This document shows positions 31,578-62,059 of a stretch of DNA of 64,000 nucleotides, piece by piece. Under the pieces are notes generated by a model that saw nothing but the letters and a program-made list of their open reading frames with translations, made no database searches and was not told where the DNA came from. This DNA comes from Histomonas meleagridis 2922-C6/04-290x (Eukaryota > Protista > Parabasalia). Numbering within the stretch: position 1 is the first letter of the stretch; each line of letters starts with the position of its first letter. The position numbers and the translations under genes were made by a program. The stretch spans positions 186,001 through 250,000 of the forward strand of contig JAANOX010000243.1 in NCBI GenBank assembly GCA_020184695.1, written 5' to 3'.

Positions 31578-33618
31578 ACACACACACACACAGCGCTATG
31601 TGAGCTTCGTGCTACGCACTCGCTCCCACTCGCGCTACATAAACTAAAGGATGAACGGCTAAAATCGATTGAATTATCATAAATCGGTTGGTTTTGATTG
31701 AAAGTAATAAAATATATTTAAATTCATGATGACATTTATATTTAAAATGTGTGAGGCATGAATCCGGCTGAGTTGTTGTTAATACTATGTGGATTTTAGT
31801 GTTTTGTTGTTAATCCTATGTAGATTTTAGTGTTTGGAGCTTAAAGTTGTTATTAACTGAGATTTTGAATGTAAAAAGTATCATTAAAATTTTGAGGGTT
31901 AACTTTAACCTTTTTTTTAACCCTTTTTTTAACCCTTTACGAAACGGAGAAAATGAGCATTTTTTGAATGATTTAACGCAAAAGTTGAAAGTTGATATAT
32001 CGGTAAGAATTTGACGTTAATTCTATGTCGAAAGTTGTTATTAACTGAGATTTTGAATGTAAAAAGTATCATTAAAATTTTGAGGGTTAACTTTAACCTT
32101 TTTTTTAACCCTTTTTTTAACCCTTTACGAATCGGAGAAAATGAGCATTTTTTGAATGATTTAACGCAAAAGTTGAAAGTTGATATATCGGTAAGAATTT
32201 GACGTTAATTCTATGTCGAAAGTTGTTATTAACTGAGGTTTTTGAATGTAAAAAGTATCATTAAAATTTTGAGGGTTAACTTTAACCTTTTTTTTAACCC
32301 TTTTTTTAACCCTTTACGAAACGGAGAAAATGAGCATTTTTTGAATGATTTAACGCTGAAATTGCATGTTTACAGGAGCTACTGTGAGGTTAAAAAAAAG
32401 GTTAACTTTTAGGTTGACTTTTCCTTTAATTTTTTATATATGTTTTTCTGATTTTTGTGTCACTTTTTGTGTAAAGGTCGTTGGTTCGAGATACAGCGAC
32501 ATTGAATTTTTTTGTGGAACCACTTTTTTATAATTTCATATAACATTTCTGTTTTTCGTTTCACGTAACATTTCCGGTAAATCATTTCATATCACATGTC
32601 TTTCCATTTCATTTAACATGTCTTTTCATTTCATATCACATGTCATTACTTAACGGATGCCAAAAATCGCACGTTTACACCGTTTCGTAAAGGGTTAAAA
32701 AAAGGGTTAAAAAAAAGGTTAAAGTTAACCTTTGAAAAAAATTAACGTTCGTTAGTGATACGTTTACGAAAAATAAACGGACGGAGAAAATGACGGTTGA
32801 TAAATTTGAACAACCGCTGAAAAAGTAAGTTGTGAAAAATAAACTTTTTTTAACGGATTTCAAAAAATTTTTTTTAAACGTTTTTCTGTTTAAAATTTAA
32901 CGGAAATTAACGGACGGAGAAAATGACGGTTGAAGTTGTTGTAAAAAATATTTTGAATTATCATTTAATTTAGTGGCAAATGTAAAATTTTTTGAATTGG
33001 TTTTTACAAGTATTAGAATCTTAAAAAAAAATCTGACACGCGTTTCTCGACACAGGAGCATTTTTTTTTCAATGTTGTAAAAGGTAAAGTATTGAATCAT
33101 TTTACAATGAAAAAAATTTAGGTGGTAATTGAACGTTAAGGATGAAAAATTGGCGGGCAGTGATGAGATTTGAATGAGTACTGAAAATGTAAATTTGAAT
33201 GATGCTATCAATTAGTGTCAAACGTAAAATTTTTTGAATTGTCATTGAATTTAGTGGCAAATGTAAAAAATATTTTATGACGGTGTTTATGACGAAGGAT
33301 AAAGTGAACGTTAAGGAAGAACGTTAGAGTCGAACGTTAAGGAAGAACGTTAGAGTTGAACGTTAAGGTAGAACGAGTAAAAAAAGTTCAAAAATAAAAT
33401 TCAATAGGTTTGGGAATCGAACGTAAGACATTAACAAAAAAACGCACTGTACGGGAATCGAACGTAAGGCGTTCATTGAAAAAGTGAAAAACTGACATTG
33501 AAATTTAAAAATAAATTTATCTCGTTATGTGATAGTTATTTTCACATGATTTACATATCAAACGATTTCTTATTGTTTGTATTTTCCGGAAAAGTTATTT
33601 TTTCTCCTTCAAACTCTT
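31578..33618 (+). repeat. Left terminal inverted repeat (~2.04 kb)
   Basis: Near-identical reverse complement of 52441-54475, from acacac-agcgctatgtgagc to ttctccttcaaactctt. Confidence 0.93.
31842..32355 (+). repeat. ~189-bp tandem subrepeat (about 2.7 copies) in left TIR
   Basis: aaagttgttattaactgag recurs at 31842, 32031 and 32219. Confidence 0.9.
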
Positions 33619-33742
33619 TTGAAATTGCTATATTTTGATTACCAATATATGCATTTAATGATATAATTCTATTATCGATTTCTTCACGTTTCTCAACAAG
33701 TTCGTTTGTGATCTTCTTGACAATATCATTTCTGGCTTTCAT
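33551..33742 (-). CDS. Small element ORF whose 3' end lies in the TIR
   Basis: 63-aa ATG ORF; its C-terminal 21 codons are within the left TIR. Confidence 0.35.
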   Translation of the reverse strand: MKARNDIVKKITNELVEKREEIDNRIISLNAYIGNQNIAISKEFEGEKITFPENTNNKKSFDM

Positions 33743-33788
33743 AAATCTATTATTTAATTCTGCAGGAGCAATATTTACAAGTTTCTTT

Positions 33789-34013
33789 TCATTTGTTTTT
33801 AGTAAGAATGTTATCGGTAAACTTTAAATTTACTGATTCAAGAAGTTTTAAATTCTTATCATAAAATTTAACGCCTACAAGAATATTATTATGAAGTATA
33901 GGTTTATTTGTTGGTTTGTCTATCTTCACTGTTGTATTATGATTATATTTAAAATCAACAGCGGCGTAATCAATTTTATATTCTGATATCAAATAATCTT
34001 GGAATGAATCCAT
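33789..34013 (-). CDS. Small element hypothetical protein
   Basis: 74-aa ATG ORF, divergent from the ATPase gene. Confidence 0.4.
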   Translation of the reverse strand: MDSFQDYLISEYKIDYAAVDFKYNHNTTVKIDKPTNKPILHNNILVGVKFYDKNLKLLESVNLKFTDNILTKNK

Positions 34014-34053
34014 TTATTAACGGTAAAAAATTTATTTTTATAAATAAAAAATA

Positions 34054-34955
34054 ATGCGAAAAAAAATAATTCGGAGAATATAGATAAAAAATTTGATGAG
34101 ATAGAAGAATTGTTTGATAAATTAGAAAAACAAAACAAAGAAATTTTAGAGAATGCAAAGATAAAACCAATACATGAAAAATTTTTATTTGCTCAAAACG
34201 GAATAACAGCTTTTATAGCGCCGATGGGTTCAGGCAAATCATATCTTTACGTTAAACTCGGAGCGAAACAAGAAGTATTATTTAACGAACCGTTTTTTGA
34301 ATTAATAACTATTTGTAGTACATCCTCAAAATTTGATGAAACAGTAAATACTTATAAAGGAGCATTATAGAAAACGAAAATTTTTACGATAAAAAATACT
34401 GATTTATTAGACTTGATTAATAAATATATTCTGAGAATTTTAAAATATAATAATATTATCAAATATATCAAATCTGTTTTTAAGAAAACGGATGAAGAAG
34501 TAGAAAGATTATTTATGAAATATAATTTGAATAACTCAAAGAAGAAATTAAAATACATTTCTGAAAAGTTAGCGAAATATCAATGGAAAACTTATCCGCA
34601 TAGATGTTTGTTGATATTAGATGATTTTGCTAATCATCCTTTGCTGAGAAGTAAAGAAACGGAGATGTCAAGATTACTTAAAAAACTCAGACACTTTAAT
34701 ATTAACGTTATCATTTGTGTGCAAACAACAAAAAGTATACCAAAAGATATAAAAAGAACTTTATCAGATATTGTATTATTTAATGGAATTGGAAGTGAAG
34801 ACTTTTTTGATTTGTTGAAGGAATCACCAGCGAGTGTTTTTGACGCAAAAGCTTTATGGAAAGAATATAGCAAAATGAAAGACCCACACGCAACCTTCAG
34901 TATTCACATCAAAGCACGAAGAGTAATTATAAATCAAAAAATAAAAGAATCTTAA
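34054..34955 (+). CDS. Packaging ATPase (FtsK/HerA, A32-like); one in-frame TAG and a likely 5' poly-A frameshift
   Basis: Walker A FIAPMGSGKS, Walker B LLILDD, and LRHFNINVIICVQ. ORFs 34110-34370 and 34413-34955 are in the same frame, separated by TAG 34368-34370. Confidence 0.85.
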
Positions 34956-35002
34956 GATTCGGAACGGCTCTCTGAGCCTGAGCTCCTTCGGAGCGAAACA
35001 AT
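34948..35002. terminator. 55-bp GC-rich double hairpin, copy 1 (putative 3'-end signal)
   Basis: GGCTC-TCT-GAGCC (34966-34978) and GCTCC-TTC-GGAGC (34982-34994) between the convergent ATPase and mCP genes. Identical to 46473-46527. Confidence 0.5.
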
Positions 35003-35015
35003 GTTTCATAAAAAT

Positions 35016-35776
35016 TCATTTTTGATTTTGAATCTCACCGACAAATAAATCTTCATCCTGTATGCCTTGAACAGAAATTGTTATATACATTGGATTCAGT
35101 AAATGTACTTCGTGAAGGTTTGCGTCAACGAGTGTCAACTGTATATGTGACAAATCATTAGAATTTATGTCAATTTCAAAATCAGCGTTTGATACAATAA
35201 TCGGAAAAAAAAAAAAAAAAGAGTTATTGATTCTAAGAACGATTTTTGAAATGTTAATGGTTTCGTTTAAATTTCTATAAGAACTTTTTTTCCAACATTC
35301 GACAAAAGATATAATACTGGAGTTGATAAAGTATTTCCGACTGATTCAGCGAATATTTCAAATGTATCTGTACCATTAAATGTTGATGGTATAGGAAGAA
35401 TTTGTGAGTATAACCCTGATATTTGAATTATATTATATGAAGCATTATTTATTGTAAAGGCATTTGAAGAAGTAAATACAATTCTACCGGCTTCGTCGAC
35501 TTCAGACGTAACGCCTGATTCTTGGATGAGAGAGTTTAAAAGTAATATAAACGTTTGAGAGTTTAAGTCAGTGTAATCATTATTGAAATAGTATTTTTTA
35601 CCGTTAATCTGTATAAAATCATCTTTCTCAATAACAACAATAGAACATTTAGTCGTTAACGATGTTACAATCATTTTTGCTTGACGTGTTGGCGGTGACG
35701 GTAAGTTTACGTCAATTCTATTGTAATGTTCAGCGTCGTAGGAAGAAATTGTATAATCAATTACTGCATTATACAT
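35016..35776 (-). CDS. Putative minor capsid (penton, single jelly-roll) protein, frameshifted at homopolymers
   Basis: Beta-rich ORF continues after shifts near 35210-35290 into PIIVSNADFEIDINSNDLSHIQLTLVDANLHEVHLLNPMYITISVQ, resembling the Polinton/PLV penton C-terminus. Confidence 0.6.
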
Positions 35777-35819
35777 TTTATATATTGTAAAAATTTATGA
35801 ATAACATATATAAAAAATT

Positions 35820-36180
35820 CAAGGGTTAAAAAATCACAAAAAGTTAACCTTTCAGTAACTCGAGCAAACATGCAATATTCGCGTCAAATCATTCGAAAAA
35901 CGCTAATTTTCTCCGTTTCGTTGAGGGTTCAAAAAAAGGGTTAAAAAATCACCTTTGAAAATTAAAAGGTACTTTTTACATTCAAAACCTCAGTTAATAA
36001 CAACTTTAAGCTCCAAACACTAAAATCCACATAGGATTAACATTAAATTCTTTCCGATAAATCAACCGTCAACTTTTGCGTTAAAGCCTTCAAAAAATGC
36101 TCATTTTCTCCGTTTCGTTGAGGGTTCAAAAAAAGGGTTAAAAAATCACCTTTGAAAATTTAATGATACTTTTTTAACAT
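35820..36180 (+). repeat. Internal diverged copy of TIR subrepeats
   Basis: Contains cattcaaaacctcagttaataacaactttaagctccaaacactaaaatc and aaaatgctcattttctccg, same orientation as the right TIR (about 54180-54230 and 53815-53835). Confidence 0.85.
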
Positions 36181-36339
36181 TTTAATTTATGTAAAATGTT
36201 TTTTATTGGTGTTTGGATGTGTGTTATTGGAACCATTTACGTTTTAAATTCAATCGTAAATACAATGATAAAAATATATGTTGTATTTAACGAAGAGGAA
36301 GGAGATAACAAAGATATCCGTGAAGATATTAAAAAGGTC

Positions 36340-37172
36340 ACTTTACTCTTAAAGTACAACAGTTTTTTTCTGTAATTATAAAGAAATACTAATTGAATAA
36401 TAAACCTGCAATATTTCGGATAAATATTATTTTTACCGTTTGTTGTAAATCTAATGTTAAATGTTGAGCCATCAGTTGGCGCGTTATATAATACAGTAAA
36501 AAAAAAAAAAAAATCACCTTTGATGCCAATGAATCGTCTCTTCGAATCACTAAATGAAGCATGAAATTCTAAATACTCTCTGTTCCAAACATTATTAAAA
36601 GTCATTACTTCCTTTTGAGTTGACAAATAACTTATACTTTCTGACGTTACATCTTGATTTAAGAATTTCAAAAAACTTTCTAAATTAGATGTAGTACTTC
36701 CTGAATCAACAATCGCAAATTTTTGCGACAAGATTTTGGCTTTCATCCGAGCCTACATAAGTACAAGCAAAATATAAATTGCCTGAGTCTTCGTATTCAT
36801 AAGATAATCTATAACTCGCAAATGAATTATTAAAACTATTACAAATTGACGTTAAAATTTCAAATAAAGTATTTTGCGCCATAACTTGAATTTTTAATGA
36901 TACGTGGATTAGGTGAAGAACCACTGACGCTTTCAGGTTTAGTTACTTCAAACTGTAATGAGAAAACGTGAGCGGTCGGCGTTATATCTAATCTTCTTAT
37001 GCCAATAGCTTTATTCTGTGACGGAGACTCTAACCAACGTTGAGGATAACGGAAAGTATAACCATTTTGAGGATTTAATACTTCATACTTATCTAAATCA
37101 AGATTTGTATAATTTTTGTTCAATCGGTAACTGAGACGCAGTTGTTGTAAATTGATTTTCAGTTTTATACAT
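36340..37172 (-). CDS. Element beta-rich protein (possible second structural protein), frameshifted
   Basis: ORF pieces 36860-37123, 36706-36924 and 36237-36746 appear to be one gene starting at ATG 37172. The 3' end is approximate. Confidence 0.45.
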
Positions 37173-37188
37173 TTTTATCTTATTAAAA

Positions 37189-37413
37189 ATGTCAAATTCA
37201 CAGTTTGAAAAAATTGAAAATATAGTAAGAGCATTAATGAATAAAAAAAACACTATTGTATACAGTAATCAATCAAAAAAATCTAATACATTATCAAATA
37301 GTATATGTACATTACAGAAAAATAGTTATGACAAATCATTTGTTTTCACTTACGGAAGAAATCATGTTGTAATATCACCGTTAGATAATAGCATAAAAAA
37401 ATTTAAAATATAA
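37189..37413 (+). CDS. Small element hypothetical protein
   Basis: 74-aa ATG ORF, head-to-head with ATG 37172 (16 bp apart). Confidence 0.45.
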   Translation: MSNSQFEKIENIVRALMNKKNTIVYSNQSKKSNTLSNSICTLQKNSYDKSFVFTYGRNHVVISPLDNSIKKFKI

Positions 37414-37483
37414 CAAAAATAATATTAAATGTGATGATATAAATACTGGAAAAAATAAAAAAAAAAATGCATATATAATTGAA

Positions 37484-40400
37484 ATGTTCGGTAAAATAAA
37501 TAAAGTATTGGATTTATATAAACAATTCGTAAAAATCAATGAAGATAGTAATAATGTTTCAATTACAAATTTAATTATTGATACCATTAATGGTTATTCA
37601 ACAGATGATTTTGCATTAAAAAATCATACACATGAAATAATTAATAATGATTTAGCTATTAATGGTAGTCTTGTCGCAAATTCCATTAACGGATATTATA
37701 TTTCAAACAGTATTGGAGGAGGTTCTAATTCAACAGTAAATATTCCATCAATCGCGACTATTAAATCAGATGGAGTCATGGAAGTCGGTGAGTATATTGA
37801 TTTTCATTATAGAGATGATTATAATAAAGATAATACGTGGAGAATTAGAGCAATAACCGATACATAAAAAAAGATGGAAGTACAATTAGTTTTAATAATA
37901 ACGGTAATATAACAGTAAATAGTATTAATGGTATTTCTACAAATGATATATCACTAACGACGCATAATCACGACGACAAATACTCTCCGTTAAATCATAT
38001 TCATAGTGATTATCTAACTAATGCTAACTTAGAAAGTATTAATCATAAATTAACAGGAATATATTATAATGAAGAAACGATTACTAATGAGGAAGAAGAA
38101 GAGGATATTACTGAAAAATATACTTTAATAAATCAAGATCTTATAGTTAATGGTACGATTAATGATATTAACACAGAAGAAATAGCTTTAGTTCGAGACG
38201 GAATTTTATCTACCGGAGACGTTATATCATTTGAAAACGGAGTCAGTATATCAACTTATGATAATACTACTGATGAAGGAATTACTGAAAATAATTTATT
38301 AATAAATTTTTCTAATGGTAATAGTATCATGTTAGAGGATAGCGGACATACTTATGGTATAATTAATAATGAAAGAGAAATAAAAACAGAATACTATTTA
38401 ACAAAACAAATGATCATTGATGATGAAGACATACAAGAAATTTTAATGGGACCTCCAGGAGAAGACGGTGAATCCACATATAAAGAAAGTTTTGTTGATA
38501 GTATATTTGATATAATAGATACATTTTTTACAGCTGCTGATACAGCATATACTATAGCTCAAATTGTAAGTCAAATAAAAAATTTTGGGTGGGCAGGATT
38601 TTTATATAATAGTTTTGGGATTAATGTTATGAAGTCAAAAGGTTATTTACCGTTACCATCATTGAAATCAGTAGTTTTTGATGAATATGATATATCGACA
38701 GGTGGAATGTTGGAAGATTTAGAAGTTCCAAACGCTGATGATATTGACCAAGAATTTAATGAATATAATTATTTAATAAATCTATTCCCAGAAATGAATA
38801 TTATATTTAAAAATTTGAAGTATTATTATAAAGACGTCTCTAAAGGTCAAAGAACAAATGAATTAGGTCTTTTTATTAGTCGATTGTCAGATATATAAAC
38901 GTTTCGTTAATCATAAACATGATAATTATTTAATAGCTGCTGATTTAAATAATTATACAGGAATAACTTATCATAAAGATTTATTAGAAACTAATGAAGA
39001 GGAGGAAGAAATATATGAAATCTACACGTCAATTAATCAAGATTTAAAGGTTAATGGATCGCTGATCTCCGATAGCTTTAGCTGTCGCGGTAATGTTGAA
39101 TGTACAACAATTAATGGTATTGATTTAGATGAATTATCTGTTATCAGTAATGATATATTTAATATTAACAATAAATTAACAGGTATTACTTTTAATAAAG
39201 ATTATGTCGAAACAAATGAAGAAGAAGATATTTATGAAATTTACACGTCAATTAATCAAGATTTAAAAAAATAAATGGTAATATAGAATGTACAACTATT
39301 AATGGTATTGATACTAATAACTTTTCTTTAACAAATCATACTCACAATCAATATTTAACTAATGATAATTTAACTGATATAAATAAGGCTTTAACAGGAA
39401 TATCATATAATGAATATGGCGATTGGACTAAGATTAAACATGATTTATTAGTAGGTAATGATATTTCATGTAGAATATTGACAGCAAGTCGTAATATCAA
39501 TATTGATTGTAGTAAATATTCAGATGATACAAATATTTATAAAGGATTGTTTATTCATAGAACTAATGCAATGCCGGGTGATTCTATTAGGATGGAAATA
39601 GGTGTATTGCCTAATGGAGATGATTGTAGCGTAATAGAACATTACGTAGGTTCTGATGATAATATTGATACTTGTCTAAGATTCAAAGTTTGTGATGGCA
39701 ATTATGTAAGTATATATAAAAATGGTAATATTAGTTGTAATAGTATTAATGGAATTGATACTAATAATATTTCATTAACAACACATAATCATGATGATAA
39801 ATATTCTTTATTAAATCATAATCATACAGAATTTAATAATGCTATTACTATTAATGGTGAACTTATTGTAAATAGTGATATATTTATTGATGGTAATATA
39901 AATTGTATTTCTATTAATAATATTTCTGTTGATAATTTCTCATTAAAAAATCATACTCATGATACTATTGATAATGATTTAAATGTTAATGGTAATTTAT
40001 ATTGTGAAACAATTAATGGAAAAATACCTGAAGAATTCTCATTAAAATATCATAATCATGACGATAGATATTCTTTAACAACACATAATCATGATGATAA
40101 ATACTCTTCGTTAAATCATACTCATAATGAATACTCATTAACAACACATAATCATGATGATAAATACTCTTCGTTAAATCATACTCATAATGAATACTCA
40201 TTAACAACACATAATCATGATGATAAATACTCTTCGTTAAATCATACACATGAAATTATTAATAATGATTTAGCTATTAATGGTAGTCTTGTCGCAAATT
40301 CCATTAACGGATATTATATTTCAAACAGTATTGGAGGAGGTTCTAATTCAACAGTAAATATTCCATCAATCGCGACTATTAAATCAGATGGTGTAATGGA

Positions 40401-41278
40401 AGTTGGACAATATATTGACTTTCATGATAATAATGATTTAAATAGTGATTATTCTTGGAGAATAAGAACTGCCGGCAATGTTATGTATTTCGGTAAACTT
40501 GATAATAATGATGGTGTTATTAGTTTCAATGGAATTGATGGTAATATAAATTGTATTTCTATTAATGATATACCTGTTAATAATTTTTCTTTAAATACAC
40601 ATACTCATAGTTATAATGATATTACTGATAAACCATCAACATTTACTCCATCATCTCATACTCATCAACCTGCTGATATTGTTCCTTATCAAAATTCTGT
40701 ATTAAAAACACGAAGATTTTTTTAGATTTCGTTTTTCATAATAATTCAACAGAAGCACCAGGTATTTATACTTGGAGAATAGCATCATATGAAAATGAAT
40801 TAGGATTTTGGCATATATCAGATGATACATACAGAAAAAGCTATTATATCAGATTGAATGGTTTTTGATATTGGCTCTCCTGTATTTATAACAGGTAACG
40901 TATATAAATTAAATAATAATAATTATACTTCAGTTACTGATTCTACTAATTGTATTCCTAGTGTTAAATCATCAGGAACTTATAAAGAATTTATCGGAAT
41001 TTGTACAGCAAAAACATAACTCTGGTGAAATTTTTTTTTTTTTTTACACAATTAAACAAGACATATCGATTAATCAAGATACAATTGATTTTGCAACTCA
41101 CGGAGATTATTATTTTAAAGTTACTGATTCATCAAAATATAATATTGGCGATACAGTGCTTTATGATGAAACTATATTAGATGACGAAACACCATTAACG
41201 GCAAAAATAAATAATATGATTATTGGAAAAGTCACCGCTATTATATCTGATTCTCTGTTAGCTGTATTTCGCTCTTAG
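37484..41278 (+). CDS. Large fibre-like protein with HxH repeats and phage tail-fibre motifs, split by frameshifts
   Basis: Fragments 37484-37867, 38329-38898, 39478-40725 and 40961-41278. Motifs THNHDDKYS, LKNHTH, KSDGVMEVG(E/Q)YIDFH twice, ITDKPSTFTPSSHTH and GPPGEDG. Confidence 0.6.
40075..40250 (+). repeat. 63-bp (21-aa) tandem repeat in fibre gene
   Basis: ttaacaacacataatcatgatgataaatac starts at 40075, 40138 and 40201. Confidence 0.92.
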
Positions 41279-41598
41279 AGCTCAAAGGCATTTTCTGCCA
41301 TTTCGGCAATAATATCTCGAATTCTTTTTAATGATTCATTCACATAAATTAACACTTCATTTATTTTTTTATGTTGTTCTGCAATAATATTTTTATTCTT
41401 TTTACTTCTTTTATCCTTCGGTTCGTTAATTTCTAAATATTGTTTACAAATTTCTAATGGTGATTTTTCTATTAAATCATTTTCTACAATAAAAGTAATC
41501 AGTAACTGAATATAAAATTCATTTAAATTAATTTTTGCAGTTTCTATTTCTTCGTCAATGTTTTCATATATTTTATTTATATCAAAAAATCTTTCCAT
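41275..41598 (-). CDS. Element hypothetical protein (107 aa)
   Basis: Intact ATG ORF preceded by TATATAAAATG; its stop overlaps the fibre-gene stop. Confidence 0.55.
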   Translation of the reverse strand: MERFFDINKIYENIDEEIETAKINLNEFYIQLLITFIVENDLIEKSPLEICKQYLEINEPKDKRSKKNKNIIAEQHKKINEVLIYVNESLKRIRDIIAEMAENAFEL

Positions 41599-41694
41599 TT
41601 TATATAAAATAAAAAAATAAAAAAAATAAAAATTAACTTTAAAAAAAATTAATGCTAATTTTTAAAAAAATTTATTTTTTTAATTTCTATAAAA

Positions 41695-42657: not shown

Positions 42658-42723
42658 AGAATTAATTTTAGAAAAAAATTAAACTTAGTTTTAAAAAAAA
42701 TTTATTTTTTTATTTTTGATAAA

Positions 42724-45009
42724 ATGCCAAAAAGATTGAGCAAAAAAGAAGTTAGAAGTTTATTTGAAAAATACGGATACACTTTACCGAAAAATTTTGA
42801 TTATAGAAATACTTCAACACCGCTTGAAGTTTATGACGAACAACATCAAAGTTATAAAAGATTGAGTGTTAATCAATTAAGATATAAAATATCAAGAGGA
42901 AGATCTGAATATATTCCGGAAGAAATTAATAATTTAATGAATCTTCCTTTAAGTGATAATGAACCGAAAAATAAAGATTCATTCGAACGTTTCAGTAAAA
43001 AGAAAGATGGATTTTTCAAAAATGAATCAGAAGATTTTAAACGTGAAGTATTTAATTTAACAAATAAATTGACAAAAAATTTAATGAAACAAAAAGATTT
43101 TACGTTTGAAAACAAATCAAGTATTGATACATTTCTTTCTGCTTTGATGTATGCGATTGAAACATGTGGTACTAAAATTAATAAAGATATTAAAATGACT
43201 TTAATTGATGAAGACGGAAGAGAACAATATTTGCATGCAAATAAAAATACCGTTGAATTTTTACGTGCTGGATTAAGTAATGAAAGAATCATTGGTGATA
43301 CAAATGATGTTGTATTTGAACATATGTTATTTATTAAAACCATTCATTTTGAATTTAAAGATTTCAAAAAAGGAAAGAGAATAAATCCAGGATTCTTTCC
43401 TTATATCAACACGTCAGATATTGATTTAAGAAAATTTGGAATATTTACAGACGTTAATGATTCTAATATAAATGAATCATGTTTAATTCAAGCATTTATT
43501 GCTTCAGAAGTATTGAAAGAAGATGAGTTAGAATTACTGAAGAGCTTTATTCAAACGCGAACTGTTCCAAGAAGTGAGTTAAAGAGAATTTCTGATTTAT
43601 TGAAAATCAAAATTGAAGTCAAAATATTTTATCCAGAAACCAAACATACACGCGTAAAGGTTTTTGGTGAGAATTACAACAGAGAAATAAAATTAATAAT
43701 TATCGAAGACCATTATATGCTAAATTCTAAAGTTAATGTTTCAGAATGTTATATAAAGAATTATGATAAAATAAATGCTGATTCAAGATTTAAAAATCAT
43801 AACAGAAAAATGATGTTATTAAAGTTTGACGACAAAAGATATTCATTTTCTAAAAAATGTTTGGGTATAAGAAGTTTGATTTATTTAATGATACAACATA
43901 AACTTTTAATGCCAATGAATCAACAAACAATAAATAAACTTTCATGGAGTTATAAGAAATCAAAAAATAAATCTTTTAACTCTTATAGAAAAATATTTGT
44001 TACTGATAAAAAACCTTTATCGATTTATTCTAAAAAAGTTAATCAAACAAAAAGTTTCTTTGGATACATTCCAGAAGAAAATGAAATCCCGGAGAGATTA
44101 AAAGAACTTCAAGAAGTTATTGATTCGTTGAAATTAAGAAAAAGAATTAATGTATCAAGATATTATAAATTTTCTGAATTAATGCAAAAGATAATGTTTG
44201 AGTTCGGATGTTTTGATAATGTATATTCATTTTCTGGAGAGATTGCAGATAAAATAAGATCTGAAATTCATTTTCCAAAAATTATTTGGAATAAGATTTA
44301 TTTAAAACAAAAACTTTATTATATTGATCAATGCGGAGCGTATATGTCAAGTGTTCAATCAATTCCTGCTGGATTACCTGATGCTAACGGAAACTTTAAA
44401 GAAGAAAACACAAAAATAAAAGAGTTAATAGAAAAATTATATGATGCAAGAATGAAAGCCAAATTATTGGGAAAAGATAAATTATCAACAACACTTAAAT
44501 TTTTGATGAATAGCTGCTGGGGATTTTCGATTCAAAAACCAAAAATTATAAAACATAAATTTGTAAATAACGTTAATAAGTATATTGATGAATTCGCACC
44601 TTATGTATTAAAATACACTTATAATGCAGATGGAATTTCAGGGTTTGTTGATACAATTAATCCTTATGTCGAATGTTTCACTTATCCACAATTTGCAAAA
44701 AGTGTATTAGATAATTTTAATGAAAAAATGAATCTTATAAAAGATCTTGTGAAAGTTTATTACTCAAAGGTTGATTCTGCGTTAGTGTCGGAGGAAGATT
44801 TTAAATTACTAAAAGATAAAGGATTTATTGGTAATGAACTCGGTAAGTTCAAGATTGAGCACGTTTTCACTGAAGTGTATTTTAAATCTCCCGAAAATTT
44901 TATCGGTAAGCATGAAGACGGAAGTTATTACTATCACTGCACGCCAAAAATAAAACAATACTGTGAAAATTCAAGTGATCCGATAAAGAAATTAATGAGT
45001 ATGAGCTAA
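42724..45009 (+). CDS. Divergent protein-primed family B DNA polymerase
   Basis: Intact 761-aa ORF. Motif A YYIDQCGAY, motif B KFLMNSCWG, motif C YYSKVDS, then LGKFKIE. Confidence 0.8.
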   Translation: MPKRLSKKEVRSLFEKYGYTLPKNFDYRNTSTPLEVYDEQHQSYKRLSVNQLRYKISRGRSEYIPEEINNLMNLPLSDNEPKNKDSFERFSKKKDGFFKNESEDFKREVFNLTNKLTKNLMKQKDFTFENKSSIDTFLSALMYAIETCGTKINKDIKMTLIDEDGREQYLHANKNTVEFLRAGLSNERIIGDTNDVVFEHMLFIKTIHFEFKDFKKGKRINPGFFPYINTSDIDLRKFGIFTDVNDSNINESCLIQAFIASEVLKEDELELLKSFIQTRTVPRSELKRISDLLKIKIEVKIFYPETKHTRVKVFGENYNREIKLIIIEDHYMLNSKVNVSECYIKNYDKINADSRFKNHNRKMMLLKFDDKRYSFSKKCLGIRSLIYLMIQHKLLMPMNQQTINKLSWSYKKSKNKSFNSYRKIFVTDKKPLSIYSKKVNQTKSFFGYIPEENEIPERLKELQEVIDSLKLRKRINVSRYYKFSELMQKIMFEFGCFDNVYSFSGEIADKIRSEIHFPKIIWNKIYLKQKLYYIDQCGAYMSSVQSIPAGLPDANGNFKEENTKIKELIEKLYDARMKAKLLGKDKLSTTLKFLMNSCWGFSIQKPKIIKHKFVNNVNKYIDEFAPYVLKYTYNADGISGFVDTINPYVECFTYPQFAKSVLDNFNEKMNLIKDLVKVYYSKVDSALVSEEDFKLLKDKGFIGNELGKFKIEHVFTEVYFKSPENFIGKHEDGSYYYHCTPKIKQYCENSSDPIKKLMSMS

Positions 45010-45098
45010 AAAAAAATTTATTTTTCGGCTGATTTTGCAAAATAAAAAATTAAAGCTAATTTTAAAAAAATTTATTTTTTTATTTTCTATAAAATAGA

Positions 45099-45662
45099 AT
45101 GAGTTGGATTGATTGTGTTGCAGATGCTGATTATCAAATATTCACAGAATTTCCGTTTCAAATAAGAAGAAAATCAAATAAAAGAATCATTAGCGAACAT
45201 GTCGATGAAACACGAGGCGGATACGTTCAATGTCGCTTAAACGGCAGAAAATATCTTAAACATAGAATAATAGCAGAACAATTTATACCAAATCCTGAAA
45301 ATAAACCTTTTATAGATCATATTAATCATGACAGAACAGATTTTCGCATTAATAATCTCCGCTGGGTTTCTTCATCAGAAAATAATTCAAATAAATCATC
45401 ATACCTTGGGAAAGATTATGAATATTTTGATGAAATTAACGAAGATTCAATTGAAGTTAGAGAGTATAACAATTATCTATTTGAGGATTATTACTATGAC
45501 AATGAAACAGATTCGTTTTACTTTTGGAACGGTTTGCAGTTCAGAAAATTGAACATTTGCTATGATAAGCGCGGTTATGCTTTAGTTTATGCACGCGATA
45601 TTAATAATAAACAAGTTCAGATTTATTATGCAAAATTCAAAAGAATTTATGGTTTCGACTGA
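45099..45662 (+). CDS. HNH endonuclease (HNH_3/homing type)
   Basis: HRIIAEQFIPNPENKPFIDHINHDRTDFRINNLRWVSSSENNSNK. Confidence 0.9.
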   Translation: MSWIDCVADADYQIFTEFPFQIRRKSNKRIISEHVDETRGGYVQCRLNGRKYLKHRIIAEQFIPNPENKPFIDHINHDRTDFRINNLRWVSSSENNSNKSSYLGKDYEYFDEINEDSIEVREYNNYLFEDYYYDNETDSFYFWNGLQFRKLNICYDKRGYALVYARDINNKQVQIYYAKFKRIYGFD

Positions 45663-45664
45663 AT

Positions 45665-46080
45665 TTATTTATAACTTATTTTTCCTGATGACTTAACAAA
45701 TTTTGTTGATATTTTTCTTTCGCTTAAGAATTCACAGACGTCAGAGTAATTATATTTCAAATTATAAGTATTACCGTCTTTCTTTACATATATTTTTGAT
45801 ACATAATCTAACGTTGAGCTTTTGCAACATCCGGCGTCGGTGTCCGCCTTCACTAACTCAACTTCTTGAGTATCACATAATAATTGAACAAGTTTAACTA
45901 ACTATTTTCTGTTGCATTAACATTAGGATAAACCGCTACATTTTCATAAGGATTTGATACTCCTTTTACCACAACATTAACGTTTTGACTTTGACTTTGT
46001 TTCGGAGAATTTATATTAGTTCCAACTCTTGCAAGAAATCCTCGATTGCAGGATAAAACACTACTTTTAGGAACTGACAT
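45665..46080 (-). CDS. Element hypothetical protein, one frameshift
   Basis: ORFs 45898-46080 and 45665-45853 join if one T is restored near 45900; the same sequence is conserved in the older relic. Confidence 0.55.
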
Positions 46081-46119
46081 TTTTTATAAGTGATAAAAAT
46101 TTATTTTTACTGTTATTAA

Positions 46120-46500
46120 ATGGAGGAATCTCTTATTCCAATAAATATTTTCGATTTCATCAAACATCTAAAATTAAATAAAAAGATAACAACAAAACAA
46201 TTACCGTTTATAGAAAATATTTATTTCTATATTAATGATTGCGTAATATATAAATATGTAATTGCTGTACGTCCTGAAATGTTTAAAAGAGCGAAACGTT
46301 TCGGTTTGGAATCATTATATAATGTCTATTGTGGAATTAATGTTAAGATTTATGAACCAATACCAAATACAGCAAAAGGAAGATTTATTTTGATGTGGAA
46401 TCCAGGCAATTGTGAAATTACAGTTGCTGAAGGTGAAGACGAATTACCAAATAATTTTGACAAAAATAAAAAAATCTTAAGATTCGGAACGGCTCTCTGA
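46120..46500 (+). CDS. Element hypothetical protein (~120 aa)
   Basis: ATG ORF in TAAATG context; a homologous relic is present at about 30990-31100. Confidence 0.55.
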   Translation: MEESLIPINIFDFIKHLKLNKKITTKQLPFIENIYFYINDCVIYKYVIAVRPEMFKRAKRFGLESLYNVYCGINVKIYEPIPNTAKGRFILMWNPGNCEITVAEGEDELPNNFDKNKKILRFGTAL

Positions 46501-46527
46501 GCCTGAGCTCCTTCGGAGCGAAACAAT
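46473..46527. terminator. 55-bp GC-rich double hairpin, copy 2
   Basis: Identical to 34948-35002; lies between the convergent 126-aa ORF and the MCP gene. Confidence 0.5.
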
Positions 46528-46549
46528 ATTTTATAAATCAATAATATTT

Positions 46550-48165
46550 TTATCTTGCTCCTCCGGCAATTATCTGCTCGATTGATGCGTTGGTAATTTC
46601 AATTTGACTTCTACCGTCAGGCTTCATTGCTCGAACTTTCAACAGTGCATCTTCAAAATAAATTCCAGTCGGTGCGATAAAGTTTACATTTTTCATTGCG
46701 GTATTTGCCAAACGATCGCCAAATAATTCAATCTGTACCGTCCCAGTTGTTGATATTCCACCCATAAAATCTTCTCCCTCAGCAAATGGTAATCCAATGA
46801 AGAAATTACTGTTATCTTTACCGTGCCACACTCGTGTTTGGGTATTAACGCCAGTATTATTATAAGTATTCTTGAAGTAATACGGTTGAACAGAAGTTTT
46901 AATATCTTTTGACAAAGAACTCAGCAAGCTTCCATTAAGATTTACTGCATCAAGAAGCATATTAAGATTTCTTGGATCATCAACTGTTTCGTATGCTTCT
47001 CTTGGATAAATTTTACCGTCAATATTAAAACTATATCTTATTTGAGGATTTAAGAAGCATGTTCGTGAATATTGTGATTCTCTGAATACAGTAAACATAG
47101 TATCACAATGTTTAAGTCCTATTGTTGCTGCTGTGTTAAATGATGTTGGAGCACTTGTTGAATTACTTCCGAGTGGTTGTGTGAAATCTCTTACTTGACA
47201 AACGTGAATTGGAAATAGCATCGGAACTTGAATATATTTTGCAGCAAGAGCATTAAACACATCCATTTTCAAAAAGATATGTTGCAAGCTTAATTTTAAC
47301 ATCTTTTGTAACTTGGCTATTGCAAACAAATTTTTTGAGGTGCATCCATTGTTGCGTAAGTTGTTGAACCGCTTCCTGCTGTTGCTTTAATGTTGCTCTT
47401 TACTGATTCATTAACATTTCTAAATCCAAGGTCACATAAATAATCTCCTTCAACTACAGCTTTTGCAGCAACTAATGATTCATGATCGCATACAGGAGCA
47501 ATAACAATATTTTGATATGAAGGCATCAGTTCGATTGAAAGCTTGCCGCTCCAGTTAGGATAATATCGCATATTAAATAACATTAAGAAATAACTTAATG
47601 GAATTCTTAATGGAATCCTGACTATAACTTCTTTAGATGCAGTAATTGCACTAAAGTCACAGTAAACGCCAGGAACCATTGAATCATGAGCTCTGATTTT
47701 ATCAATAGTTGCGAAACAATCATTACCGGCTTTAGCTTCATCAGATAATGAATTAGAAAGCATGAACCATTCATACCTTGCGTTATGAACGTCTTGAATT
47801 TTATCTGTGTTTGAATAAATTCTGTATTGGTCTATAGCATCGCATGAACATTTATAACCGACATAATATTCTTTAAACAAAAGATTTGATTGTGACGGAA
47901 CGGTAATTGGTACTTCTTGTTCTAAAGTAATATATGAATTATCTAAACCAATAATCTTAAATCTATCCGTGAAAATGTCAACGTATGTTGTATCTCCTTC
48001 GTTTATATCTCCAACATTGCCGTAAGAAGTAGCTGTCGTGTATTCATAATTGCCTGGAATGATTTCAGAAGCTTTAACTGCTTCATCAACTTCATTATAC
48101 CAATCTTGAAGGTTTCCAGTCATTGCATCAATAACATTTGGTTGTTGATTTTGTGGTGCAAACAT
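46550..48165 (-). CDS. Putative major capsid protein (double jelly-roll), ~537 aa after removing two homopolymer insertions
   Basis: ORFs 47317-48165 and 46550-47329 join. Size and beta-rich motifs (LDNSYITLE, VRIPLRIPLSYF, RYYP..SGKLSIEL) fit a Polinton MCP; position within the Maverick supports this. Confidence 0.65.
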
Positions 48166-48191
48166 TTTATAGTGATAAAAAAATCAAAACA

Positions 48192-49944
48192 TCAATTAGA
48201 ATCTAAGTCTTCAACAGTTACTGTATTTGTTAACGGTAACAATCTTCTATTAGAAAAAGTTCTTAAATCATTATAAAATTGAAGTAGTAAATCAGGTGCT
48301 AATTGACTTTTATTTGTTCTAGTAAATCCAGCATATTTATGTTGATTTTCTGCTAAAAATTGATTAAATCTATCATCTCCAATTGAATTAATCAAAGCAT
48401 CAATATTATATTCAAGTTGTATTCTTTGATTATTTTGATTTACAACTTGTTGTGCAATATCTGATTGTAATTGATTTGTTATTGCTAATTTTCTTGTCGG
48501 TGATAGATTACCGCTAAACATTTGTTGTTGTATTTCAATTTGTGCTTGACTTTCCATTGCTTTTTTTGTATACTCATTCGCTAACTCAACATCTTGAGCT
48601 CTTCTTTGATTTTGTAACGTTGCTATTTTTCAAATTTGTATTTTTCTGTATTTGTGCTTTATGTTCGGCAGAATTTAAATATTCTAATTCAGCATCAAGA
48701 GCTATTTTATTTTCTTCGGTTGCTTGTAATTCCTCTCTTCTTTTAATTTCTTTTTCACGTTCCTTCGTTTGAACTTTTTTCTTAGCGTTCTTAACAATCG
48801 ATTCTTTGTGCGTCTTGCTTATTTCTGGTTTTGGTCCAACGGCTGTTTGATATGCTCCTAATTCTTGAGCTTTAATTTCTTCATCAACTGTTTTTCGTTG
48901 TTGCTCAATTTCCGCTTCTTTCAATCTTTCAAATCTTGCTCTTGCTCTTAATCCAGGTCGTTGTTTTTTTCTTCTTCAGCAAGTTGTTGTTGATATAAAC
49001 CATTAATGCTTTCCATGTATTGATTATCTAACGCCTGATATTGCTCCGGAGTTAATGCTGTTATTCTTTTAATTCTTTCTTGTTCAAATTTTTTTTTTTA
49101 GCTTCATTTTTGAGCTTTTAATAGTTCATTTTTCATAACGTGCTCTTTCTAATTCATATTGTGTCTGTGCTCGCATTTCATTTGCATTCTTATAATCTTC
49201 TGATTTTAAAACTTTCTGTAAAGTTTCATTTTCATTCTTTACTTTTTCTAACTCACGTTGCAAGCTACTTTTAATTCGCATTTGTTCATTAGCTTCTATT
49301 TCATGTTGGCGTTCAATAGTAAGCATTTTTGCTTCAGCTAATTGAGCTTGAATTGTTGCGTTTTGATCTTTTAATAAATCAATGTCGCCTCTATACTGAG
49401 TTTTTTTAAGTTCTGCCAAAGCTTTTGCGTAACGTTCAGTTTCTTGTTGAGCTTTGTTTGCTAATTCATGCTGACGTTCAATCTCTCTTTCTGCCATTTC
49501 ACGTTTTTGCTTTTCTTCGTTATACTTTGCCTCAGCAGCTTTTGTTGCTTTTTTCATATTTCTTTCTTGTTCATCCAAATTCTTTTTTCTTGCTAATTCA
49601 TCTTGTTTCTCTCTTCGCGTATCATTAATTTGTTGTTGACGAACATCGTTTTGATTTCTCATATTATGTATTGCGTCAAGATTTACGTTTTTTGGCGTTT
49701 GTGATTAAGCAACAGGAAGAGATGGGTTTTGTAAATTTGCCATCATTTGTGACCTAGCAGAACTACTATTTTGATTTTGCGGTAAGGGAAGAATATTTGA
49801 TCTAACACTAGCGTTTGGGTTAATTGTTGGTGCTTGAGTAATTAGTCGATTCGCGTGCGAACTTTGCGATAGCAAATGCCTTAATCCACGTTTAACATTT
49901 TTTTTTGTTTTTCTAATTCTTCGTTTGACTGCTTTCTTTGTCAT
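48192..49944 (-). CDS. Long coiled-coil protein with highly basic N-terminus, multiply frameshifted
   Basis: Starts MTKKAVKRRIRKTKKNVKRGLRH; fragments 49705-49995, 49126-49662, 48586-48924 and 48192-48557. Confidence 0.5.
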
Positions 49945-49967
49945 TTTATAAAAATAAAAATATTGAT

Positions 49968-50600
49968 TTATAAATATTGAACTCTTGCTCTCCATCCGCG
50001 TTGTACCGGCACGTTATAAATTTGTTCTTGAGGTTCAGAAACTTGAGCTTCGGACGAAAATATAACTTCCTTTTTGTTCTTGTTCTTCATTTTTGTTCTT
50101 CATTCTTTGTTTGTTCAACTGTTGGAATTTCTTCTGAGTCAATATAAATGTCATTCTTTAAACTTCTGTATTTCTTCTTAAGCTTTTTTTTGTTTACCTG
50201 TTAATTTATCTAATCTTGAATTTAATTCAATTATATGCTCCATTAATAATTGGTCGTTTGATAAATAAACTTTACCGTCGTTGTTGTTTTTTTTTTCTTT
50301 TTGACTTACCGTTGGAGTTTTTGATTTCTTTGCTATAACTCTAGCGTTACCGTTCTTGAAAAATTTGACGTCAAAGAATTCATTTTCAATTCCTTTTTTA
50401 GCATTAGCAATTATAATTTCTTTTTCTTCTTGTGTTAAATCTTTTACCGACCTTTTGGAAGGATCGAGCCTCGGCGAGACTGCTTTCTTTGTTATCTTAA
50501 CATCAGATGTTTTTTCTTCATCAACATTTTCGGTTTCCTCTCCCAAAACAATTTCTGTTTCAGTTTCGTGACTCAAAACTTCATTCTCTGTATCAGTCAT
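49968..50600 (-). CDS. Element hypothetical protein, frameshifted
   Basis: ORF 50178-50600 continues past a poly-T shift to PVQRGWRARVQYL*; a homologous relic is at about 62950-63410. Confidence 0.55.
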
Positions 50601-50638
50601 TTATTAAATATAAAAAAATGAAAAAAATTCATTTTATT

Positions 50639-51121
50639 TTAAGATGCAAACTTAGTATCTCCCGGAGCATAAGGCATCACTGCGGGTCGAGGTTGACCGG
50701 CACCATATCTTCTTCCTCCAAGTATCACATCACCGGTATATTTTGGTTTTGTTAACTGACCATAAATTTTTCCTCCTGCTTGAATCCAAGGTTGAGTTTT
50801 ATCCGAAATCTTTTTGACCTGTATCGATTACTCTATCGGCTACTTCTTTGCCTTTTTTTCAACTGCTTGTCTTATTTTGTCTTTAATCTTACCGTCAGGT
50901 ACGGCATCAACTATTTTATCTATTTTATCTGTTATATCTCCTTTACGCTTTCTTACCGTATCAATTATTCCTGGAATCTTTTTTTTTTTTTTTATTCCTC
51001 GACTGATTATTGGCGAGACCTTACCGTAAATTCTCTTTCCTTTATCAATAACTTTTCTTACAAGTCGTCCTGCATTTTGAATAAATTTTCTTATTCCACC
51101 GAATATACGACCTAATCCCAT
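50639..51121 (-). CDS. Putative myristoylated amphipathic-helix (membrane-penetration-like) virion protein
   Basis: MGLGRIFGGIRKFIQNAGRLVRKVIDKGKRIY: Gly2 followed by an amphipathic basic helix. The 3' part is frameshifted and its end is approximate. Confidence 0.45.
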
Positions 51122-51158
51122 TTAATATAATTAAAAAAAACGTTTTAATAACTCTTAA

Positions 51159-52314
51159 ATGAGTCTAAACATTAATAGAGAAATTGACAAAACACATTTT
51201 AAAACTTACAGTCACGTCAAAAAACACGTGCAAAATAAATTTCCAAATGTTAGTGAAAAGAAAATTAAAAAAGTAATATCAAGGAGATTGAAGGATAAAT
51301 TTATTAAAACAAAAGATATAAAACCTTATATGATAAAAATATTTTCAACTGTTCCAAATTGTTGGTTTCATGATTTATACGATAATACTAAAGGAAAAAC
51401 TCCTCGTTATTGGCATGTGTTTATTGGCACAAATAATAGATATGTTTATTGTCTGCCGTTAATGTCAAAGTCAGCTGGAGCAGTTCATGAAACATTAAAA
51501 CGATTTATTGAAAAATTCCATCCGGTAAAATTAACGTCAGATGAAGAACCAGCATTTATTGAAAAAAATAATTTAAAACTTCTTTCTGATAATAAAGTTG
51601 CCGTTCATACAATATCAGATAAAAACCATTCGTCTTTAGGCATTATTGATAGATTCATGCGAACAATAAGAGATATGAATACTCCAACGGAAAAAACTCT
51701 AAAAATCAATGACATGATGAAAAAAATACACATTTATTACTCCAGAAAGAATGAAAAAGTTTCTGAATATTTATAATAATACTTACCATTCAGCCATCGG
51801 TTGTTCTCCAAAAAGAAATGTTTGATAATAAAGATTTAGAAAAAAAGAATATATATTTAAAAGTTTAGAATCTTCTGAAAAAAAAAAATGTATTAAGAAT
51901 TTAATTCTTCCTGTTGGCTCTTTTGTACGCTATATATTACCGCGTCATAATGGCATAACTAAAAAAAGATTTCAAATAAGTCGTGAATGTTATAAAATTG
52001 ATGAACGGAAAGGAAATATGTACGTTTTAATTGCTCAAGACGGAACGGTAATTACTAAACCAAGATACAAACTAATACCGATTGGTAAGAATAAACCAAA
52101 TAATATTAAATGGGCGTCAACTATTCCTGGTAAATGGGTTGGTTCTGTTGAGTCAATTTTATCATTTAATCCTAAAACAAATAAGTATAAAGTACTTTTT
52201 ACCGTTCCTGGGCAACGTTCATATCAAGATGAAATTCCTGCTTCATTTCTCCGAGGCAATACTCCTCATAAACAATCAGAAATTGAAAGAGAATTTTTTG
52301 CTAAACATAAATGA
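51159..52314 (+). CDS. Retroviral-like (rve) integrase, frameshifted
   Basis: WFHDL, LTSDEEPAF and LGIIDRFMRTIRD core; the C-terminal fragment 52018-52314 is beta-barrel-like. Confidence 0.85.
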
Positions 52315-52440
52315 TATTAATATTTATTTTTATACATGACAAACTAACTAACTAACTAACTAACTAAAAAAGAAACTAGCTAAAGGAAATTCAAAATTGT
52401 TCCGTGAGTTTCTCCATTCATGTGAAATCACTTGAAAATC

Positions 52441-54475
52441 AAGAGTTTGAAGGAGAAAAAATAACGTTTCCGGAAAATACAAACAATAAGAAATCGTTTG
52501 ATATGTAAATCATGTGAAAATAACTATCACATAACGAAATAAATTTATTTTTAAATTTCAATGTCAGTTTTTCACTTTTTCCATGAACGCCTTACGTTCG
52601 ATTCCCGTACAGTGCGTTTTTTGTTAATGTCTTACGTTCGATTCCCAAACCTATTGAATTTTATTTTTGAACTTTTTTTACTCGTTCTACCTTAACGTTC
52701 AACTCTAACGTTCTTCCTTAACGTTCGACTCTAACGTTCTTCCTTAACGTTCACTTTATCCTTCGTCATAAACACCGTCATAAAATTCGTCATCAAATAT
52801 TTTTTACATTTGCCACTAAATTCAATGACAATTCAAAAAATTTTACGTTTGACACTAATTGATAGTATCATTCAAATCTTGTTTTCAGTACTCATTCAAA
52901 TCTCATTACTGCCCGCCAATTTCTAATCCTTAACGTTCAATTACCACCAAAATTTTTTTCATTGTAAAATAATTCAATACTTTACTTTTTACAACATTGA
53001 AAAAAAAATGCTCCTGTGTCGAGAAACGCGTGTCAGATTTTTTTTTAAGATTTCAATACTTTTAAAAACTTTTTCAGAACTCATTCAAATTCATTTCCCG
53101 CCAATATTTTTCAGTACCTATTCAATTATTAATCGTTTTGCCACCAAATTAAAAAAAAAAAAAAAAAATTTTACATTTGCCACTAAATTAAATGATAATT
53201 CAAAATATTTTTTACAACAACTTCAACCGTCATTTTCTCCGTCCGTTAATTTCCGTTAAATTTTAAACAGAAAACGTTTAAAAAAAATTTTTTGAAATCC
53301 GTTAAAAAAAGTTTATTTTTCACAACTTACTTTTTCAGCGGTTGTTCAAATTTATCAACCGTCATTTTCTCCGTCCGTTAATTTTTCGTAAACGTATCAC
53401 TAACGAACGTTAATTTTTTTCAGAGGTTAACTTTAACCTTTTTTTTAACCCTTTTTTTAACCCTTTACGAAACGGTGTAAACGTGCGATTTTTGGCATCC
53501 GTTAAGTAATGACATGTTATATGAAATGAAAAGACATGTCAAATGAAATGGAAAGACATGTGATATGAAATGATTTACCGGAAATGTTACGTGAAACGAA
53601 AAACAGAAATGTTATATGAAATTATAAAAAAGTGGTTCCACAAAAAAATTCAATGTCGCTGTATCTCGAACCAACGACCTTTACACAAAAAGTGACACAA
53701 AAATCAGAAAAACATATATAAAAAATTAAAGGTTAAAGTTAACCTAAAAGTTAACCTTTTTTTTAACCTTACAGTAGCTCCTGTAAACATGCAATTTCAG
53801 CGTTAAATCATTCAAAAAATGCTCATTTTCTCCGATTCGTAAAGGGTTAAAAAAAGGGTTAAAAAAAAGGTTAAAGTTAACCCTCAAAATTTTAATGATA
53901 CTTTTTTACGTTCAAAACCTCAGTTAATAACAACTTTCGACATAGAATTAACGTCAAATTCTTACCGATATATCAACTTTCAACTTTTGCGTTAAATCAT
54001 TCAGAAAATGCTCATTTTCTCCGATTCGTAAAGGGTTAAAAAAAGGGTTAAAAAAAAGGTTAAAGTTAACCCTCAAAATTTTAATGATACTATTTACATT
54101 CAAAACCTCAGTTAATAACAACTTTAAAAGGGTTAAAAAAAAGGTTAAAGTTAACCCTCAAAATTTTAATGATACTATTTACATTCAAAACCTCAGTTAA
54201 TAACAACTTTAAGCTCCAAACACTAAAATCTACATAGGATTAACAACAAAACACTAAAATCCACATAGTATTAACAACAACTCAGCCGGATTCATGCCTC
54301 ACACATTTTAAATATAAATGTCATCATGAATTTAAATATATTTTATTACTTTCAATCAAAACCAACCGATTTATGATAATTCAATCGATTTTAGCCGTTC
54401 ATCCTTTAGTTTATGTAGCGCGAGTGGGAGCGAGTGCGTAGCACGAAGCTCACATAGCGCTGTGTGTGTGTGTGT
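52441..54475 (-). repeat. Right terminal inverted repeat (~2.04 kb)
   Basis: Reverse complement of the left TIR, with differences in subrepeat content. Confidence 0.93.
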
Positions 54476-54480
54476 GTTTG

Positions 54481-54556
54481 TGAGTTTTTAAGTGAGAAAA
54501 AAATAAACATAAAATTCGTGATAAGTTCGATAAAAATAACGAATAAATAAATGCTA
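54481..54556 (+). mobile_element. Continuation of the interrupted older Maverick ORF
   Basis: Joined to the left flank it reads ...gacGTTTGtgagtttttaagtgagaaaaaaataaac (DVCEFLSEKKI), matching DVCEFLSERKI of ORF 45665-45853. Confidence 0.85.
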
Positions 54557-62030: not shown

Positions 62031-62059
62031 AAGCTTTAATTGGGTGTATCATGAAAGAA

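Follow-up and report, generated by a model that had tools for sequence, protein, structure and literature searches.

The 64,000 nucleotides analysed here (positions 186,001 to 250,000 of the forward strand of contig JAANOX010000243.1, Histomonas meleagridis 2922-C6/04-290x, assembly GCA_020184695.1; hereafter the window) harbor a large insertion with terminal inverted repeats (TIRs), and the question raised by this locus is whether the insertion is a virus still able to form particles, a satellite of another virus, a transposon or a decayed relic. As detailed below, it is very probably an endogenous DNA virus of the Maverick/Polinton type, integrated in the H. meleagridis genome and since decayed, and derived from a lineage that formed particles until recently. 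A preliminary description of the window had proposed a Maverick/Polinton-like endogenous virus, and this assignment is supported by the TIRs, the target site duplication (TSD) and the genes for a packaging ATPase, a penton, a major capsid protein (MCP), an integrase and a fibre-like protein. About sixteen recognisable genes were found in the element, assigned by Pfam matches and by tblastn searches with intact relatives from metagenome contigs and the H. meleagridis genome (Table 1).

The element (31578-54475) is an insertion of 22,898 bp with a 5 bp target duplication. Its ends and the TSD are exact to the base, because an uninterrupted paralogous site (reverse-complemented) aligns continuously over the left and the right flank and contains the pentamer only once, as GTCTG for GTTTG. 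The TIRs are ~2,040 bp long, and in a MAFFT alignment their arms are ~97-98% identical when two indels (~100 and ~84 nt) are excluded, one of which is a change in copy number of the 188 bp tandem repeat. At both tips (AC)7 is directly followed by AGCGCTAT, and the terminus AGCGCT(GT)7 was also obtained for two other genomic copies with unrelated flanks. Long TIRs and a TSD of 5-6 bp, here GTTTG, are hallmarks of Mavericks/Polintons; the ~2 kb TIRs, (AC)7 ends and 5 bp TSD given in the preliminary description were thus recovered by TIR alignment and from the paralogous empty site. The insertion lies within an older element of a related type, which it splits exactly at the insertion point. In addition, the 12 nt motif TTTAACCCTTTT was detected 26 times against 1.5 expected occurrences. 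In both TIRs (31904-32723 and 53432-54149) it forms groups of two or three, and two more copies lie between the penton and p270 genes (35934-36142); within this family it could serve as a promoter element or as a binding site for a protein.

For the MCP and the penton of the capsid module, sequence searches against Pfam, PHROGs and the PDB were empty, and the folds were obtained by structure prediction of relatives alone. A search with the N-terminal piece of the MCP returned 136 representatives in 1.84 billion proteins, of which the full-length ones measure 530-575 aa, and in a profile search with the MCP alignment the best 120 of 340 matches all belonged to the same family. One full-length homolog (P0336) is listed by NCBI under Methanobrevibacter sp. 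as a hypothetical protein; its contig was most likely assigned in error to a metagenome-assembled genome from gut or rumen. For the MCP, AlphaFold2 (AF2) was run on a 561-aa relative with a 45-sequence alignment; this relative is 65% identical to the window gene over the whole gene and 70% over the N-terminal piece. The model (pLDDT 87.5, pTM 0.85) contains two beta-barrels. When compared to the PDB with Foldseek, it matched the Sputnik MCP best (E 1.6e-13), followed by those of iridovirus, mavirus, PBCV-1 and PRD1, and in a library of viral models it matched MCPs of virophages, adintoviruses and giant viruses. Homologs of the penton are 243-269 aa long. The relative chosen for modelling is 88% identical to the window protein when the whole gene is compared and 96% in the N-terminal piece used for the search, and its AF2 model (pLDDT 72) gave the mavirus penton as best match (E 6e-6, probability 1.0), followed by Sputnik and adenovirus pentons. 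A pattern scan of IMG/VR with the penton found no relative. Both predicted jelly-roll assignments hold via these close intact relatives, and the putative MCP and penton of the preliminary description passed the fold test on the models. The third gene of the module, the ATPase, is 76% identical to an intact 307-aa relative. A double jelly-roll MCP and a penton, seen here through proxy models, and an A32-type ATPase are what is expected of a Maverick/Polinton.

A long fibre-like gene accompanies the capsid genes. Its intact relatives (1014 aa, and 1187 aa in another lineage) are rich in His-x-His units, for which a 33/63 bp tandem repeat at 40049-40253 of the window codes. His-x-His repeats are known from phage tail-fibre proteins of the T4 gp37/gp12 type. 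The element's gene resembles them in its many His-x-His units and in a C-terminal motif that matches PHROG tail, minor-tail and tail-fibre families (E 2e-7 to 1.5e-3), but the match extends over only ~35 residues and phmmer against the PDB gave no match. On this basis 'fibre-like', the label given at the outset, seems a fair one. A D5-type helicase was also considered for the broken series of open reading frames (ORFs) at 37-41 kb, by comparison with the relative L001; tblastn gave no match, and the region is the fibre gene.

Genes for mobility and replication were identified with different certainty. The integrase is 61% identical to an intact 383-aa relative, and an rve integrase is again typical of Mavericks/Polintons, although the gene is broken in the window copy. 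Both the ATPase and the integrase named in the preliminary description were confirmed with Pfam as Pox_A32 and rve members encoded by broken genes. The third enzyme named there, a pPolB, is plausible; the 761-aa gene is open, and its likeness to a polymerase is weak and at the level of motifs. No member of this protein family (22 members searched) matched Pfam including DNA_pol_B_2, PHROGs gave no match, and tblastn against 50,697 phage records remained without a match. The one PDB match, obtained with two different profiles, was E. coli Pol II; it is weak (E 0.3-0.6), and the alignment spans motif B plus a collinear stretch over motif C. We regard the protein as probably a divergent family-B polymerase. 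For an adenain-like cysteine protease, no Pfam, PHROG or PDB match was obtained in any ORF or in the small proteins of intact relatives; a very divergent protease may sit among the proteins without a family match.

Relatives of the element bear directly on the role of its capsid genes. A further copy, 92-99% identical at the DNA level, is present in H. meleagridis WSYJ01000146.1 (L003), and the second H. meleagridis assembly contains an element copy that is 73-92% identical, with a terminal stretch of 99%. An element of a sister lineage (L008; WSYJ01000151.1:531282-543532, at a contig end) has seven genes in a single frame without stops, encoding the MCP, penton, ATPase, polymerase, p196-type protein, p270-type protein and fibre; the MCP gene is the only one annotated. 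Moreover, fully open and tightly packed relatives were found on 15-17 kb contigs from three metagenome or sequencing-run samples, one of them labelled gut metagenome, and one identical penton protein was found on contigs in 34 collection blocks (24 contigs read). Among the metagenomic relatives dN/dS was 0.00-0.19 for the MCP, ATPase, penton, p270-type and p196-type genes, on few substitutions. Since relatives are intact, the penton recurs and the virion genes are under purifying selection, the family seems to have needed working capsids until recently, and we infer that the lineage was a particle-forming virus until then. This makes it unlikely that the element belongs to a lineage of transposons confined to the genome, in which the capsid genes would be functionless relics. 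Such a lineage would fit the decay of the window copy and of L003 and L004, and their nesting in older copies as in the Mavericks of Trichomonas vaginalis (TvMavs), but not the low dN/dS of the intact relatives' virion genes, the identical pentons on many contigs or the L008 element, in which the whole virion module is open.

Other genes differ between the copies. L003 carries a Pox_A22-type (RuvC-like) resolvase between DUF3839 and the polymerase (L003:2680-3156; Pfam E 4.7e-14), which is also found in the metagenomic relative L005 and is not present in the window copy when compared with L003. A DUF5906/VapE-type (D5-like) helicase was identified in L001:6893-9541, L002:14089-15495 and L004:3928-5805, and because it occurs in some relatives and not in the window copy, the replication module varies within the family. 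In the window copy the HNH_3 homing endonuclease gene follows the polymerase gene, and a second copy, 71% similar, is found close to the end of the L003 element (L003:13418-14046). None of the metagenomic relatives inspected (L001, L002, L011-L013) has the gene, which suggests that it is a mobile homing endonuclease carried along by the element.

The poxvirus-type families of the ATPase (Pox_A32) and of the L003 resolvase (Pox_A22), together with the D5-type helicase found instead in some relatives, recall satellites of large DNA viruses. A virophage-type satellite that relies on an egovirus or another large DNA virus infecting parabasalids would also agree with the best fold matches of MCP and penton, which are to the virophages Sputnik and mavirus, and with a preprint that ties egoviruses to Parabasalia and their polintons via KilA. 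We consider this still less likely than the transposon. The element has its own integrase and polymerase-like gene, neither KilA nor evidence for giant-virus-type promoters was found in the window copy, and the window contains no giant-virus sequence. Furthermore, the capsid proteins of virophages and Polintons are structurally alike anyway. Virophages depend on a giant virus; the likeness of the Histomonas element to mavirus and Sputnik lies in the capsid fold, at a sequence identity of 8-12%, and no cysteine protease was recognised in it. An rve integrase is likewise encoded by mavirus, together with a protein-primed polymerase.

Compared with intact relatives, at least ten genes of the window copy are interrupted, namely those for p158, ATPase, penton, p270, fibre, p219, p196, MCP, the coiled-coil protein and the integrase. 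The coiled-coil and p196 genes are partial as well as broken, and in-frame stops were found in the ATPase (one), p219 (four) and integrase (three) genes. Open genes are those for the polymerase, the DUF3839 protein, the HNH endonuclease, the p119-type protein and the 93-aa protein. Assembly error does not explain the in-frame stops, the missing gene, the partial genes or the 2-3% divergence of the TIRs, and seven host ORFs of the window (251-1249 aa) are all uninterrupted. The lesions also differ by copy: in L003 the ATPase gene is open and the polymerase gene broken, while the reverse was found in the window, which points to independent decay after insertion. With at least ten genes broken and one missing, the window copy is a molecular fossil, unable to produce particles on its own. 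That it may still do so, as had been suggested, finds no support, given the breaks in the MCP, penton, ATPase, fibre and integrase genes; that it is complete applies to its boundaries and to the presence, in some form, of every gene class named, but most genes are interrupted and the resolvase is missing. It is therefore very improbable that the copy is a complete and intact provirus, from a distinct lineage, which may still form particles without help, since its full TIRs of 97-98% identity, conserved termini, perfect TSD, complete set of module types and the possible errors of a Nanopore-based assembly are outweighed by the interrupted genes, with substitution-type stops in the ATPase, integrase and p219 homolog, by the absent resolvase and partial genes and by the clean host ORFs of the same window.

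Several points weigh against a decayed Maverick/Polinton-type virus from a recently particle-forming lineage. The capsid folds were predicted for relatives and not for the broken MCP and penton genes of the window, and the polymerase call rests on E values of 0.3-0.6 and motif collinearity, with empty Pfam and phage tblastn searches. A maturation protease, KilA and a D5-type helicase were not recognised in the window copy. The dN/dS values are based on dS of 0.015-0.066, and the assembly combines Nanopore and Illumina reads, so that errors of assembly could account for some of the frameshifts in a repeated element. Taken together, we nevertheless favor this explanation. The history of the copy begins with rve-type integration of a linear element into an older related copy and duplication of 5 bp, a step that we regard as established. 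By homology and fold, the element carries a virion module of double jelly-roll MCP, penton and A32 ATPase, plus a long His-x-His fibre-like protein, and a very divergent family-B polymerase may have copied the linear genome from its inverted ends. After integration the copy decayed, and any activity would now be possible only with proteins from other copies.

Table 1. Features of the element and of related remnants in the window (positions are those of the window; a dot marks features without a strand).
Feature	Position	Strand	Evidence and remarks
Older remnant, left half (MCP end, p119 and p196 homologs)	30362..31577	.	75-81% similar; ends at insertion point
Left TSD copy GTTTG	31573..31577	.	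Directly outside left tip; paralogous empty site
Left TIR	31578..33618	.	(AC)7 tip, 188 bp tandem repeat, triplets of the 12 nt motif TTTAACCCTTTT
p158 homolog (conserved 148-163-aa protein), broken	33554..34013	-	Frameshift
A32/FtsK-type genome-packaging ATPase, broken	34071..34955	+	Pfam Pox_A32 E 2.6e-9; one in-frame stop
Penton (single jelly-roll minor capsid protein), broken	35016..35776	-	Frameshift; fold via AF2 model of relative
Intergenic copy of TIR repeat unit with two TTTAACCCTTTT motifs	35844..36175	.	Repeat and motif search
p270 homolog (conserved 268-270 aa), broken	36237..37174	-	Frameshifts; adjoins fibre gene here and in relatives
Fibre-like gene with His-x-His repeats, broken	37189..40725	+	Several frameshifts; intact relatives 1014-1187 aa
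Homolog of 219-aa protein (p219), broken	40681..41278	+	Frameshift and four in-frame stops
DUF3839 protein, open, 320 aa	41695..42657	+	Pfam E 1.8e-25
Probable very divergent family-B DNA polymerase, open, 761 aa	42724..45009	+	77% identical to intact 761-aa relative
Phage-type HNH_3 homing endonuclease, open	45099..45662	+	Pfam E 1.9e-13; PHROG HNH families to E 9e-21
p196 homolog (186-196 aa), broken and partial	45665..46080	-	tblastn of relatives
Homolog of 104-119-aa protein (p119), open	46120..46500	+	tblastn of relatives
MCP (double jelly roll), broken	46550..48165	-	One frameshift; fold via AF2 model of relative
Homolog of 539-566-aa basic-headed coiled-coil protein, broken, partly lost	48192..49995	-	tblastn of relatives
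140-aa ORF matching part of relatives' 203-215-aa protein (p203)	50178..50600	-	tblastn of relatives
93-aa basic Gly-rich ORF starting MG, open	50840..51121	-	Divergent from integrase gene
rve-family integrase, broken	51159..52314	+	Pfam rve E 3.6e-8; frameshift and three in-frame stops
Right TIR	52441..54475	.	(GT)7 tip; pairs inverted with 31578-33618
Right TSD copy GTTTG	54476..54480	.	Directly outside right tip
Older remnant, right half (polymerase gene end)	54476..56440	.	Same older copy as 30362..31577
Separate older remnant (integrase to coiled-coil region)	62039..63989	-	75-90% similar

The remaining genes of the element are less informative. No informative Pfam, PHROG or PDB match was obtained for p158, p270, p196, p219, p203 or the coiled-coil protein. 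DUF3839, the Pfam family of the open 320-aa protein, is a Trichomonas family, a trait shared with TvMavs. The 93-aa ORF is, by position and sequence, the homolog of a 132-142-aa protein of the relatives, and appears to be the best candidate for the 'entry peptide' that the preliminary description had mentioned.

The rest of the window is typical of a parabasalid and contains intronless eukaryotic genes for a BspA-type leucine-rich repeat (LRR) protein, Myb, 14-3-3, a kinase, eIF3c and a phosphatase. The 14-3-3 protein was found as an exact match, beside the same WD40 gene, in contig WSYJ01000029.1 of H. meleagridis GCA_020186115.1. No tRNA or Rfam families were found in the window. The BspA-type LRR surface protein gene (1249 aa; 17665-21411; Pfam LRR_5, 11 stretches) lies 10 kb to the left of the element. 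A third remnant is located 8 kb to its right, and the locus has been struck repeatedly by one element family.

Parabasalid Mavericks have so far been known mostly from T. vaginalis, where they make up ~40% or more of the genome (Sullivan et al., 2025; PMC12289875), and it was not until 2023 that their capsid genes were identified. TvMavs (Pritham et al., 2007; PMC12289875) resemble the Histomonas element in their parabasalid host, a size of 10-28 kb, up to ~19 genes, an rve integrase, TIRs and frequent nesting. The Histomonas host, however, is a tritrichomonad, and its element has no detected KilA or Pfam pPolB match, but carries the His-x-His fibre and HNH genes. A further difference is that none of the 45 MCP-family members tested matched DUF4106 at E <= 0.01, the Pfam family to which the MCP of T. 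vaginalis Mavericks corresponds (Bellas et al., 2023; PMC10120064). The accessible part of the latter study describes a Metamonada MCP group from five parabasalid species, lists 61 MCP genes for the H. meleagridis assembly WSYJ01 and 72 for JAANOX01, and thus includes the host species of the window element. Because H. meleagridis MCPs were counted there despite the missing DUF4106 matches, they are probably tied to the Metamonada group at the profile or structure level. That part of the study gives counts and MCP clusters; where the elements begin and end, their TIRs and TSD, the penton and fibre genes and the extent of decay are not given there. The distinct lineage suggested in the preliminary description is therefore only partly new, while its MCP genes had already been counted, and the window copy is an ordinary dead provirus of a lineage with capsid genes already catalogued.

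A full-text literature search turned up no paper devoted to Mavericks or Polintons of Histomonas; the three papers in which these terms occur together are about other subjects. In the H. meleagridis genome paper, in which Mavericks are unmentioned, DNA transposons account for ~0.2% of the genome or ~100 kb (PMC8529796). The 61-72 MCP-bearing elements, if ~20 kb each, would exceed 1 Mb, and the repeat content of the genome therefore seems under-annotated.

For the Histomonas family, the window copy supplies base-exact ends and a full gene map. A 2026 preprint survey leaves parabasalid Mavericks still ungrouped. We put forward, as a tentative proposal that may well need revision, that the copy is the fossil of an extant polinton-like virus lineage of gut parabasalids (Histomonas and probably relatives in mammalian guts), which would be ungrouped in recent surveys and combine virions and a His-x-His fibre with a replication module that evades profiles and varying accessory genes (HNH, A22 resolvase, D5-type helicase). 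The His-x-His fibre, the purifying selection on virion genes and the occurrence of intact relatives in gut metagenomes together suggest that a living virus lineage exists in gut parabasalids.

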